Below the pieces are notes generated by a model. The model was given only the letters and a program-made list of their open reading frames with translations, did no database searches and was not told the origin of the DNA. Both the position numbers and the translations under genes were made by a program. A DNA stretch of 64,000 nt from Piromyces finnis finn (taxonomy: Eukaryota; Fungi; Neocallimastigomycota): the NCBI GenBank assembly GCA_002104945.1, contig MCFH01000043.1, forward strand, positions 248,001-312,000, in the 5' to 3' direction. Of this stretch, positions 32,781 to 61,684 are shown piece by piece (within the stretch, counting starts at the first letter, position 1; every line of letters begins with the position of its first letter).

Positions 32781-34274
32781 ATGAAATTCAATTCTATTTT
32801 ATTATTAAGTTCATTATCAGCTGTTGCTTTAGCTAGACCACATGATAACGCTTGCTGGTCTGAAAAATTCAATATTCCATGTTGTCAAACCACTAAGGAA
32901 GTTGTTAGAACCACTTATGATGGTATCTGGGGTATGGAAAATGGTGAATGGTGTGGTCTTGGAACTGAAAGCACTAGACCAAAGGATGATATTCCACCAT
33001 CTCCACCAGCTCTTCTTGACCTTGATTCTGTCGTAGATCCAGCTGCTGATTGTGATATTTCCAATGTTATAACTGGTGATTCTTTAGCTCAAGAAGCTCC
33101 ATTCCGTTTTGGTGTTGGTTTCAATGGTGCTGCTGTTTCCACCTCAACTACTTCTTCCAAGGTTATGAGAGAACTTGTTAAATACCAATTTAATTCATTC
33201 TCATACAGTAACCTTATGAAACCACTTTTCGTTCTTGACCAAGCTGGTTGTCAAAAGAACTTCAAGAATGGTAGTAATGAAATTGCTCTTAATTTTACTC
33301 CATTTGTTGATGGTTTAGATTATGCTCAAAAGAATGGTCTTCATATTAGAGGTCACGTTTTAGTCTGGCACAAGCAATTCCCAGACTGGTTCTTTAGAGA
33401 AGAATTTGACGATGCTAAGGAATACGTTTCTGAAGAAGTTATTTACGAACGTTTAGAAAACTATATTAAACAATATCTCGGTTTCGTTAACTACAACTAC
33501 CCAGGTGTTGTTGATGTTTGGGATGTTGTTAATGAAGCTGTTGAAGTTTTAGAAGGAAAATTCGATAACAGTACTGGATGGTACACTCGTACTATTACTT
33601 ATGAAGGTGATAGAAACATCTGGTATGACTTTGTTGGTCCAGATTATGTTGTTAAAACTTTCCGTATTGCTCGTAAATACGCACTTCCAAATGTTAAGTT
33701 AGTTTACAACGATTACGATACTTTTGCTCAACAACCACATGACAAAACTCAAGCTATTATTGATCTTATGCACATTTTACAAAAGGAAGATTTAGTTGAT
33801 GCTCTTGGTATGCAATCTTACATTCAACCAATTGACCCACCATTTGAAGAAAATGTTGCTAACTACGATAAGGCTCTTCAACGTTTTGCTGCTGAAGGTT
33901 TTGAAATTCAAATTACTGAATTCACTATTTATGCTACTAATGGTGAAGATTGGTTAGAAACTCAAGTTTACCAATACCGTAAGATGATGGAAACTATTAT
34001 GAAGAACTACAAGAATGGTGCTAACATTACTAGTGTTACTGTTTTCGGTTTACAAGATGGTTACAGATTCTATGAATCCGATTCTACCAAAACTCGTCTC
34101 TTCGATCATGAACTTCAAAAGAAGCCAACTTACGAAGCTATCATGGAAGTTTTAAAGGCTTACAATGCTGAAGTTAATGATGAATCTAATATCGAAAGCG
34201 ATGAAGAAATCTCAGTTGATGCTGATGTTGATGTTGCTGAAGATTCTGCTGATGATGACAGTGATGAAGAATAA
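32781..34274 (+). CDS. GH10 glycoside hydrolase (copy a): signal peptide, N-terminal fungal dockerin (CBM10-like), acidic tail
   Basis: CWSEKFNIPCC...WGMENGEWCG; RGHVLVWH, WDVVNEA, YNDY, GMQS, QITEF; D/E-rich C-terminus. Confidence 0.93.
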   Translation: MKFNSILLLSSLSAVALARPHDNACWSEKFNIPCCQTTKEVVRTTYDGIWGMENGEWCGLGTESTRPKDDIPPSPPALLDLDSVVDPAADCDISNVITGDSLAQEAPFRFGVGFNGAAVSTSTTSSKVMRELVKYQFNSFSYSNLMKPLFVLDQAGCQKNFKNGSNEIALNFTPFVDGLDYAQKNGLHIRGHVLVWHKQFPDWFFREEFDDAKEYVSEEVIYERLENYIKQYLGFVNYNYPGVVDVWDVVNEAVEVLEGKFDNSTGWYTRTITYEGDRNIWYDFVGPDYVVKTFRIARKYALPNVKLVYNDYDTFAQQPHDKTQAIIDLMHILQKEDLVDALGMQSYIQPIDPPFEENVANYDKALQRFAAEGFEIQITEFTIYATNGEDWLETQVYQYRKMMETIMKNYKNGANITSVTVFGLQDGYRFYESDSTKTRLFDHELQKKPTYEAIMEVLKAYNAEVNDESNIESDEEISVDADVDVAEDSADDDSDEE

Positions 34275-35075
34275 ATACAATAAATTCACTCTCTAATAGA
34301 ATAAAATTAAAAAGTTTTCTTTTTTTTATCCTAAAATAAAAAATTTAATTCAAACCTTTTTCATAGAAAAAATAAAATAAAATATTTATATATAATTAAT
34401 ATAAATATTATAATATTTATAAATTATTATGTATGTAAAATATAATAGAAAACTATTTATTTAACTAAATTATACAAAAAATTAATATAAATTATAATAT
34501 AAACAAACAAACAAACAAACAAAAAATAAAAATAAAATTAAAAAATAAATTTTAAAAGAAAAAAAAAAAATCAAAAATAAAATATACATAAAAGAAAAAG
34601 TTATTTAAAAAAAAAAAAAAAGTTTAAAAAAGAGTGCAATATTTTTTATTTTTAAATAAAATAAATATTTAAAAAATATTTATTTAACTATCGTGTTTTT
34701 TCATAAAGCATAGTAAAGTAAAAATGATATTAAAAAGGACTAAATTATTTATTTATTTTTTTTTTTTTATTTTAATGAATAATAAAAAAAATTGTTTTCC
34801 ATTAATAAATAAAAGTTATTAAATCGAACAAGACACTAAAATTTAAAAAAAAAAAGAAAAGAATTGATTATAGAAAAAGATATAACTCTATTTATATATT
34901 TTATAAAATAATGTAAAAATTAAAAAAAGAAAAAATAGAAATATTTACTTTATTATTATTATTTTTTTTAGACTTCCTCATTTAACCTCCTGTATATAAT
35001 ATGTGATGTGATTGTATATTATTGTACATTGTCATATCAGTAAGACGTCGTATAAAATACATAAAATTCTATAAA

Positions 35076-35207
35076 AATAAAATAAAATAAAATAAATAAA
35101 TAAATAAATAAATAAATAAATAAATAGAATTATAAATAAATAAATAAATAAATAAATAAATAAATAAATAAATAAATAAATAAATAAATAAATAAATAAA
35201 TAAATAA
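35076..35207. repeat. (TAAA)n tetranucleotide repeat
   Basis: Direct reading; one interruption. Confidence 0.9.
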
Positions 35208-59016: not shown

Positions 59017-59130
59017 ATCATCATCATCATCATCATCATCATCAGTATTATTATTATTATTATTATTATTATTATTATTATTATTATTATTATTATTATT
59101 ATTATTATTATTATTATTATTATTATTATT
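59017..59130. repeat. Compound (ATC)n-(TAT)n microsatellite
   Basis: Direct reading. Confidence 0.9.
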
Positions 59131-60148
59131 GTAAATTGAAATGCCATAAAACAAATTTGTTTTTTTCTAAAGAATGAAGAACTTAGGAATAGTGATTTTT
59201 TTAAAAAAGGTTTAATTTAAAAAATATATTTTATTCCAAAATATAAAAAAAAGATAATTAATAAAAATTTAAGAAAACTTTTTGAAAAATATAGTAGCTT
59301 AATGGAAATTTAATTATAAAATATAATTAATAGTAAATAGCTATTGCAATGAAATTTTTGATTGTAATAATTGTTTACATGATTAATTTTATTTTTATAA
59401 TTATTATTTTTGATATTAATATTTTGATATTTTGATATCATGTAATTTTATCTTAAAAATAATTTCTATCTACTTCTTTCAATTTCCATTCTTATAAAAT
59501 AATACTTTTTTTAAAGTATATAAAATTTTAAATGGATAATTGAATTTTCATATTTTTTTTATTAATATTCAAACAATTTTTTATTGAGATAAAAAAAAGT
59601 ATTGTTAATAATAAAGTATAATAGTGTTATAAATCATAATAATAATAATAATAAATAAAATATAAAATTCCAAACTATAAAAAAGTAATAAAATAATTTT
59701 ATAGCATTAAACTTTTAAATATTCTACTACATTGTATTGTTTTTTATTATTCTTATTATTATTATTTTTTTTTTTTTAAAAAAATAGATTAAAAGTTTAA
59801 TTATTAACAAAAAAAGTGCCACTAATACCTTTAATAGAAAATAAAATTTTTTGAATCTATAATTATACAATAGAATTAGTTTCCTATTGTGTAACAATTA
59901 ATGTTAAAATAATGAATGTTGAATTTAATTTGATTAAAATATAAATTAAAAAAAAATACTATTTTAATTATATTTATAAAAATTCTATAAATACTTCTTT
60001 AAATCCATTTTTTTTTTACTTAATAAAAAACATATACATATATAAAATATACATAAATATATAGATAATACCTAATTAAAATAATAATAATTGTTTTAAT
60101 AAATATACAAAAATTTTATATAATATTATAAAATAATAATAAAAAAAA

Positions 60149-61684
60149 ATGAGAATAAATTATATATTATTATCAAGTATACTATCCAGTGTTTTGGCAA
60201 AATCAAAAATTAGTAAATATTATGAAAATTGTTGGTCTGAAGAATTTAATATTCCATGTTGTCAAAATTCAGATACGTTGATCCTTAGAACCACTTATGA
60301 TGGTATTTGGGGTATGGAAAATGGTGAATGGTGTGGTATTGGAAATAGAAATATTAGACCAATTGATGATTTTCCTCCTTCTCCTCCTCCAATTTTCGAT
60401 ATCGAAACTTTCGATGATCCTGCAGCTGAATGTGATATTTCAGATTCTATTACGGGTGATTCATTAGCTAAAGAAGCACCTTTCCGTTTCGGTGTTGGCT
60501 TAACCGGTAGTTATTTCTATTCTTCTACAACCCTCTCTAAAACAATGCGAGAACTCATTAAATATCAATTTAATTCCATGACTTATACCAATCTTATGAA
60601 ACCTTCTTATGTTCTTGATCATGAAGCCTGTATTGAAAATGCGGCTAATGGAATAGAAGATGTTGTTTTAAACTTTTCAGGAATTGTTGATGGTTTAGAT
60701 TTTGCCTATAAAAACGGAATCCATATTCGAGGACATGTTTTAGTATGGCATGCTCAAACACCAGATTGGTTCTTTAAAGTAGGATTTGATTCCGAAAATG
60801 AGCTTGTTGATCCTGCTACATTTGAATATCGTTTAGAAAGCTATATAAAGCAATATATTAGTTTTGTTCAATACAACTATCCGGGTGTTGTTGATGTATG
60901 GGATGTTGTTAATGAAGCAGTTGAAATTGAAAACGAAACACTTTTTGATGCAAGCACAGGATGGAATACACGTGTTCTTACTCTTGATGGAAATGAAAAT
61001 TTATGGTACAAGATATTAGGACCAGATTATGTTATCAAATCATTTAGACTTGCACGTAAATATGCTCTTCCAAATGTCAAATTAGTTTACAACGATTACA
61101 ATACATTCCAAACATATCCACACGACAAGACACAAGCCATTATTAATCTTTTAAATATTTTAAGAGAAGAAGATTTAGTTGATGCAGTAGGTATGCAATC
61201 GTATCTTGGAGTTGAATGGCCAAGTGTTAAAGAATATGTTAGAGGATTTGAAAGATTCCATGAAGCAGGTTATGAAATCCAAGTAACAGAATTAACGATT
61301 TCGGCACCCAGTGGAGATGATTGGTTAGAAAAGCAAGCCAAACAATATGAAGAAGTATTTTCCAAAATCATTGAATGTGTGAATGAAGGATACAATATTT
61401 CTAGTGTTACAGTTTTTGGATTACAAGATGGTTATCGATTCTATGGTTCTGATTCTACCAAGACACGTCTTTTCGACCATGATCTTCAAAAGAAACCAAA
61501 TTATCAAGCTATTATGAATATTTTAAAAGAAAACAATGGAGAAGTTAACAATGATGAAATCAACAATGGAGATATCAACAATGAAATTCCAAATGAAATT
61601 CCAAATGAACAAGAAACTTCTAATATCATTGATAAGGATAATATTTTAGAAGAAATTCTCAATGAACAAATAGCAAAAGTATAA
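60149..61684 (+). CDS. GH10 (copy e): signal peptide, dockerin, short acidic tail
   Basis: Core identical to copies c/d. Confidence 0.92.
   Translation: MRINYILLSSILSSVLAKSKISKYYENCWSEEFNIPCCQNSDTLILRTTYDGIWGMENGEWCGIGNRNIRPIDDFPPSPPPIFDIETFDDPAAECDISDSITGDSLAKEAPFRFGVGLTGSYFYSSTTLSKTMRELIKYQFNSMTYTNLMKPSYVLDHEACIENAANGIEDVVLNFSGIVDGLDFAYKNGIHIRGHVLVWHAQTPDWFFKVGFDSENELVDPATFEYRLESYIKQYISFVQYNYPGVVDVWDVVNEAVEIENETLFDASTGWNTRVLTLDGNENLWYKILGPDYVIKSFRLARKYALPNVKLVYNDYNTFQTYPHDKTQAIINLLNILREEDLVDAVGMQSYLGVEWPSVKEYVRGFERFHEAGYEIQVTELTISAPSGDDWLEKQAKQYEEVFSKIIECVNEGYNISSVTVFGLQDGYRFYGSDSTKTRLFDHDLQKKPNYQAIMNILKENNGEVNNDEINNGDINNEIPNEIPNEQETSNIIDKDNILEEILNEQIAKV

Follow-up and report, generated by a model that had tools for sequence, protein, structure and literature searches.

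Clostridial cellulosome genes are arranged in clusters in which a scaffoldin gene adjoins the genes of dockerin-bearing glycoside hydrolases, as in the cipC-cel cluster of Ruminiclostridium cellulolyticum and the cipA-linked genes of Acetivibrio thermocellus. The question addressed here is whether a locus of the anaerobic fungus Piromyces finnis, in which a scaffoldin gene lies among genes of glycoside hydrolase families 10 and 5 (GH10, GH5), is a cluster of the same kind. The locus is contained in a stretch of 64,000 nucleotides of contig MCFH01000043.1 (assembly GCA_002104945.1, positions 248,001 to 312,000), here called the window; coordinates are window positions, base 1 of the window being base 248001 of the contig. 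An earlier note on this DNA read it as a co-regulated locus encoding a dedicated scaffoldin and its enzymes. The physical cluster of a scaffoldin-family gene with dockerin enzyme genes is indeed present, but it is not accompanied by conserved synteny, and a dedicated scaffoldin is unlikely. We hypothesise instead, with fair though not full confidence, that the array is young, arose in P. finnis alone by local duplication and gene conversion, and was not inherited as a functional unit.

All eight genes of the array lie on the + strand, in the order GH10_1, GH10_2, GH5_1, GH5_2, scaffoldin, GH10_3, GH10_4, GH10_5. The GC content of the window is 16–30%, and that of the seven spacers separating the genes, each 1.6–2.2 kb long, is 11–13%. 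A scan of these spacers found no tRNA, and the longest open frame has 94 codons, so that nothing unrelated lies between the eight genes. The order given in the earlier note, and its statement that nothing unrelated is visible between the genes, are borne out by Pfam, by the spacer scan and by a GenBank protein match: the open reading frame (ORF) at 48068-51490 is 100% identical to part of the 1673-residue protein 'scaffoldin [Piromyces finnis]', here called P0001. The genes are as follows.

GH10_1: 32781-34274, + strand; signal peptide, one CBM10 dockerin (residues 25-59), GH10 domain and acidic tail, from Pfam and alignment.
GH10_2: 35847-37559, + strand; one CBM10 dockerin, GH10 domain and long acidic low-complexity tail; GenBank model P0044.
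GH5_1: 39746-41314, + strand; signal peptide, GH5 domain, (PEPITP)n linker and C-terminal 6-Cys module.
GH5_2: 43147-44565, + strand; architecture as GH5_1, with a shorter linker.
Scaffoldin P0001: 46211-51490, + strand; 1673 residues, with exons 46211-46227, 46390-47647 and 47744-51490.
GH10_3: 53148-54749 (annotated start 53172), + strand; signal peptide, one CBM10 and GH10 domain, the tail truncated relative to GH10_4.
GH10_4: 56672-58510, + strand; like GH10_3, with an additional PT-rich linker and 6-Cys module.
GH10_5: 60149-61684, + strand; GH10 domain and one N-terminal CBM10, from Pfam.

Duplication and gene conversion within the array

A paralog of P0001, here called P0002, is encoded on the minus strand of this contig (333008-338304 of the record), 33.5 kb downstream of P0001 and inverted with respect to it. 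P0002 is followed by a second scaffoldin gene (53% identical) and then by an NFACT-R gene, an order also found in Anaeromyces robustus and Neocallimastix lanati. The Piromyces sp. E2 contig carries the scaffoldin pair and ends before any NFACT-R gene could appear. Upstream of P0002 is a divergent gene of 1175 residues, which has a homolog at the same place in Piromyces E2. Because P0002 thus keeps ancestral neighbours on both sides, P0001 is the derived copy; a scenario of inversion isomers, in which either copy might be ancestral, was rejected for the same reason. In terms of the ScaA-ScaB-NFACT-R block of the Neocallimastigomycota, as we define it here, P0002 lies inside the block, while P0001 lies outside it among genes of carbohydrate-active enzymes (CAZymes).

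Comparison of the two copies reveals a mosaic. In a sliding comparison their flanks show background identity, which is about 50% in such AT-rich DNA. The 5' part of P0001 (46211-47209) is 60–78% identical to P0002 at the nucleotide level, with a nonsynonymous divergence (dN) of 0.28 and a synonymous divergence (dS) of 0.54. From 47210 to approximately 51500 the identity rises to 95–100%, with perfect tracts of up to 649 bp; the overall dS of this 3' 4.3 kb is about 0.07, and three older patches within it have a dS of 0.18–0.24. The same pair of genes therefore shows an eight-fold contrast in dS (0.54 against 0.07), and we conclude that repeated gene conversion with P0002 has homogenised the 3' 4.3 kb.

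The conversion also affects how the duplication can be dated. When a tree is built from the C-terminal 612 residues, P0001 and P0002 pair at 100% support on very short branches, but the very recent duplication that this suggests was rejected as a conversion artefact on the basis of the sliding-identity and dS analyses. Since the C-terminal tree is distorted in this way, the duplication was dated from the 5' part. In the unconverted N-terminal part the identity between P0001 and P0002 is 61%, as compared with 46–48% between either of them and the E2 ortholog; the dS of the 5' part is 0.54 for the pair, against 0.73–0.98 for orthologs of P. finnis and E2. The duplication therefore postdates the split from E2, although it is not recent.

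Similar tracts are found in the enzyme genes. GH10_3, GH10_4 and GH10_5 have in common a tract of about 1.4 kb that is 100% identical (53293-54690, 56793-58190 and 60283-61680), with a dS of 0.007–0.014, and GH5_1 and GH5_2 have one of about 1.2 kb, likewise 100% identical (39699-40898 and 43101-44300). The flanks of GH10_3-5 drop at once to a background identity of 45–55%, and those of the GH5 pair are also at background directly outside the tract. GH10_1 and GH10_2 are old paralogs with a dS of around 1, that of GH10_1 to the other GH10 genes being about 0.8–1.2. The eight genes amount to approximately four independent blocks, so that adjacency and co-orientation are largely automatic under tandem duplication; the common orientation is unremarkable, because tandem copies are co-oriented by origin. 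Because of the identical 1.2–1.4 kb tracts, neither a short read nor a peptide can be traced to one particular GH10 or GH5 copy, and values of expression and of the proteome for these genes are probably pooled.

Short-read polishing can also yield tracts of 100% identity, and the tracts and the adjacency might in principle have arisen by misassembly or over-polishing of repeats. However, every copy has unique flanks, the contig is continuous over 479 kb, and both the 5' part peculiar to P0001 and the letters peculiar to P0002 are matched exactly by RNA contigs of independent studies. The exact RNA matches imply that the two paralogs and the mosaic are real.

Two further observations concern the repeats of the region. 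The P0001 and P0002 copies form 4.3-kb inverted repeats (window 47210-51500; L001:11010-15300) flanking a 33.5-kb segment that holds GH10_3-5, the NFACT-R gene and ScaB. Crossing-over between these repeats would invert the segment, and an orientation polymorphism is therefore possible. Separately, a dispersed AT-rich satellite, in a region of about 9% GC, is present at 28282-29087, 38176-38550, 4436-4700 and L001:7697-7899. It is 94–96% self-similar internally, with related copies of 80–90% in other spacers; one copy lies within the array and one upstream of P0002.

Synteny in relatives and transcription

The arrangement was looked for in other genomes from both sides. A tblastn search with the window GH10s and GH5s, at the P0002 locus of P. 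finnis and at scaffoldin loci of A. robustus, N. lanati (two loci), Piromyces E2 and N. californiae, found no GH10 or GH5 gene within 10 kb on either side of any scaffoldin ortholog. In other species the closest GH10 relatives do not share a contig with the scaffoldin genes. Piromyces E2 has P0033 as the ortholog of GH10_3-5 (about 81% identity across the first 460 codons) and P0043 as that of GH10_1 (82% amino acid identity), the latter alone on another contig. P0033, P0043 and the scaffoldin pair are on three separate E2 contigs, with no other class of array gene within 10 kb. The GH10 relatives in Neocallimastix are either solitary or form a GH10-only trio beside a GH16 gene, and the loci fetched contain no GH5 or scaffoldin gene within 10 kb. 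Conserved synteny, which the earlier note set as a check, is accordingly seen neither from the scaffoldin side nor from the GH10 side, not even in the congener E2, and as far as available assemblies show the arrangement is specific to P. finnis.

RNA contigs from four runs were aligned over 6,000 bases, which cover one junction of the array, that between GH5_2 and the scaffoldin. The runs are taken to be transcriptomes because three of them carry spliced contigs. The GH5_2 mRNA has a poly(A) end near 44811, no RNA contig covers 45300-45699, and the P0001 transcript starts at or before 45893. Taken together, the poly(A) end, the gap in cover and the downstream 5' end show that GH5_2 and the scaffoldin are separate transcription units. 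Operon-type co-transcription does not occur at this junction, across its 1.6-kb spacer.

Contigs from run X1 match the P0001-specific 5' part with 0 mismatches, and in the converted part the variant letters of runs X3 and X4 are those of P0002 in all 35 checked. Both paralogs are therefore transcribed. Both P0001 introns are removed in the RNA contigs. The ratio of GH5_2 depth to that of P0001-specific contigs varies among the four runs from about 0.7 to 8.6, contig depth being a poor measure of expression. No GC-containing 8-10-mer is found upstream of at least six of the eight array genes, which is a weak test in DNA of 12% GC.

The encoded proteins

P0001 begins with a signal-like peptide and ends in a hydrophobic stretch (both seen by inspection rather than with a predictor), and a regular expression for the repeat C-x(2-9)-C...[Y/F][Y/F] matches it 18 times. 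It has no Pfam domain at E<=10, and hence no catalytic domain is seen. Searches for relatives used the single large exon of the gene and the database protein P0001. Homologs with 55–76% identity over the whole query are present among the proteins of Piromyces E2 and N. lanati, and matches in N. californiae and Anaeromyces span 75% and 52%, respectively, of the query. P0001 is thus homologous to scaffoldins conserved across the Neocallimastigomycota, as a member of the ScaA family should be. The ScaA fragment published for P. finnis (PMC8262932, supplement) shows the same type of repeat, the motif having been compared by eye and not by alignment.

The criteria for fungal scaffoldins (Haitjema et al. 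2017) are used here in the form in which they are cited in PMC8262932 and PMC7015840. P0001 resembles the family in its signal-like peptide, its Cys-pair/aromatic repeats, its lack of a catalytic domain and its C-terminal anchor. It differs in size: ScaA proper is quoted at >500 kDa in PMC8262932, whereas P0001, with 1673 residues, is estimated at about 185 kDa and so falls well below the size of that protein. Dockerin binding has been assayed for a ScaA fragment only, with a quoted KD of 994 nM (PMC8262932). P0001 is a smaller member of the ScaA family, for which dockerin binding is predicted from the family.

The tail of the scaffoldin family (51380-51487 in P0001, and the tails of P0002-P0028) consists of a conserved small-residue motif, a spacer of about 6–10 residues and approximately 20 hydrophobic residues that end the protein. 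The motif is CNPSSA in most homologs and CSPSG in P0001 and P0002. This layout resembles a glycosylphosphatidylinositol (GPI) attachment signal more than it does a membrane-spanning helix followed by a cytoplasmic tail. The membrane anchor claimed in the earlier note is retained as a C-terminal hydrophobic stretch, which on inspection could equally well be a GPI signal or a transmembrane helix. P0001 probably encodes one surface-anchored protein of the scaffoldin family.

All five GH10 ORFs match Pfam Glyco_hydro_10 with E values of 1e-59 to 1e-65, and N251-E252 and T379-E380, which include both catalytic glutamates, are invariant in the alignment of the five. Each has one N-terminal CBM_10 (29.7–38.7 bits, against a cut-off of 23), in agreement with the dockerins noted previously. 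Both GH5 ORFs match Pfam Cellulase/GH5 (E about 5e-68), with no CBM_10 match at E<=0.01; they have no CBM10 dockerin and so do not qualify as cellulosomal, dockerin-bearing GH5s. GH10_2 starts MIINQNITTTGECW (35847-35880), and neither its ORF nor the GenBank model P0044 has a hydrophobic signal peptide. There is an ATG-AAA-TTT remnant about 180 bp upstream of its start, and either a 5' exon has been missed or the copy is no longer secreted. Going by their families, the enzyme genes probably encode four to five secreted single-dockerin xylanases and two secreted GH5 glucanases without dockerins.

The C-terminal 6-Cys module is about 45 residues long and has three C-x6-C pairs. Within the window it is found only on GH5_1, GH5_2 and GH10_4 (41150-41314, 44400-44562 and 58340-58507). 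It matches no Pfam family, and a region search found only one further instance, in the Orpinomyces GH5 P0153, which has the same layout of signal peptide, GH5 domain, PT linker and module. AlphaFold predicts a disulfide-stapled helical hairpin (pLDDT 76), for which a fold search gave no significant match in the Protein Data Bank, only generic helical hairpins with E above 1. The module seems to have been gained by GH10_4, or lost by GH10_3 and GH10_5, within the array.

Outside the array the window contains a gene for a type-B carboxylesterase (25503-27011, minus strand; PF00135, E 3.5e-96, no dockerin match), 5.8 kb upstream of the array and on the opposite strand, which may or may not have a role in hemicellulose breakdown. 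A DUF501 gene (23659-24243) is also on the minus strand, opposite to the array, as is an ORF at 62855-63892 that has no gene product on record. The stretch 13069-22974 holds an LTR (long terminal repeat) retrotransposon, whose LTRs at 13157-14262 and 21848-22974 are 96.4% identical. Its gag-like ORF (15927-17150) includes a zinc knuckle, and its pol ORF (17147-21835) encodes reverse transcriptase, RNase H and integrase. A tRNA-Ala(TGC) gene (13069-13142, minus strand) lies 15 bp outside its 5' LTR.

Proposed formation and possible function of the array

On the basis of these observations, the following history is proposed. At the start, old GH10 paralogs (GH10_1, GH10_2 and the ancestor of GH10_3-5) would have been together with one GH5 gene. 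The GH5 gene would then have been doubled, and one GH10 gene tripled, in tandem. A scaffoldin of the ScaA family would have been copied, in inverted orientation, from the conserved array of the 1175-residue gene, ScaA, ScaB and NFACT-R about 34 kb away, and would have landed between GH5_2 and GH10_3. Since then, ectopic gene conversion would have held the coding regions at or close to full identity, leaving the AT-rich spacers and the 5' kilobase of the scaffoldin to drift apart. The products of the array would feed the general cellulosome pool and not a private complex. The analysis establishes which genes are present, their history of duplication, the lack of conserved synteny, the conversion mosaic and the separate transcription of GH5_2 and the scaffoldin; how the duplication took place, that there is no dedicated function, and what the products do biochemically are what we infer.

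That the scaffoldin is dedicated to this array is unlikely, since gene conversion has kept about 85% of its coding sequence 95–100% identical to that of P0002, which has a different setting. The idea also fits poorly with the promiscuous binding reported for fungal dockerins, which extends even across species (PMC12063362).

Several points weigh against an origin by duplication and conversion without function as a unit. A young cluster can still be functional, and many fungal metabolic clusters begin as lineage-specific. The reading frame of P0001 is intact, transcribed and spliced, and its diverged N-terminal part of about 270 codons has a dN/dS of about 0.5; P0001 is therefore not in decay and may serve a separate role. 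Co-expression cannot be read from contig depths, and the low GC content also limits what the motif test can say. The absence of synteny holds for 10 kb on either side in five other assemblies, that of E2 being fragmented, and in P. finnis the sequence seen runs to the end of the window and resumes, 11 kb further on, at the NFACT-R gene.

The leading alternative, which we nevertheless consider unlikely, is a functional cellulosome locus, a co-regulated chromatin domain in which the N-terminal 280 or so residues of P0001 are specialised to assemble the neighbouring xylanases and GH5s. It would account for eight co-oriented cellulosome-related genes with nothing else between them, and for the unusual single N-terminal dockerin common to all five GH10s. 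It is also consistent with the transcription of P0001 and GH5_2 in the same four runs, from three studies, and with an N-terminus of P0001 that differs by 39% from that of P0002 while the remainder is held identical. Against this, the arrangement is conserved in no other genome checked, that of the congener included, GH5_2 and the scaffoldin have separate transcripts whose depth ratio is far from constant, and no upstream motif is common to the genes. The GH5s have no dockerins, most of the scaffoldin repeats are within the portion kept identical to P0002, and the promiscuity reported for dockerin binding also counts against it. If it were true, the bacterial clusters of scaffoldins and enzymes would have in this locus their first counterpart in a eukaryote, and there would be a handle on the regulation and assembly of fungal cellulosomes.

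The likeness to the clostridial clusters is that a scaffoldin gene adjoins dockerin-bearing glycoside hydrolase genes on one strand. The differences are that the P. finnis array is eukaryotic, with separate transcripts at the one junction examined; that its scaffoldin is in the middle and not first; that it contains only two enzyme families, mostly as recent paralogs; that the arrangement is not conserved among relatives; and that its proteins have no homology to the cohesins or dockerins of bacteria. It differs also from homotypic tandem arrays of cellulosome parts, being heterotypic, with GH10, GH5 and scaffoldin genes interleaved, and its converting scaffoldins are 33.5 kb apart and inverted rather than adjacent. 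Full-text literature searches on anaerobic fungi, with targeted reading, found no description of clusters of scaffoldin and CAZyme genes, which agrees with the earlier note. The adjacency itself seems to be unreported, though all the genes are annotated in GenBank.

A more speculative version, to which we give only a small chance, is that of a newborn 'cellulosome island'. Here the N-terminal 280 residues of P0001 would have diverged, once the gene had been copied into the array, so as to give it a separate role, and the eight genes would be co-expressed as a chromatin domain. The 6-Cys module of the GH5s and GH10_4 would be a second, so far undescribed module for docking or targeting, by which the GH5s, lacking dockerins, are joined to the same complex.

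Finally, the array might reflect nothing other than the chance adjacency of large gene families, or the assembly artefact discussed above, a reading that we regard as improbable. If P. finnis is assumed to have about 11,000 genes in total, with tens of them in the scaffoldin family and many dockerin genes in tandem arrays, it is not improbable that one copy should insert within an array of CAZyme genes; a rough estimate, not computed on the genome, would be 0.1–0.3 scaffoldin copies inside such an array per genome. The families concerned are large, with 227 dockerin genes in P. finnis (PMC7015840) and 319 ScaA homologs in UniProt for the class (PMC10978972). Chance placement of the copy is, however, compatible with the explanation by duplication and conversion, and is not a rival to it.

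The duplication and conversion proposed here have consequences beyond this locus. Identical tracts of 1.2–4.3 kb mean that short-read RNA-seq and proteomics can separate the paralogs only in small unique regions, and published expression values may be pooled. The ScaA-ScaB-NFACT-R block is usable as an orthology anchor for scaffoldins across genera. The array itself shows how the gene families of the cellulosome expand, and stay uniform, in anaerobic fungi.

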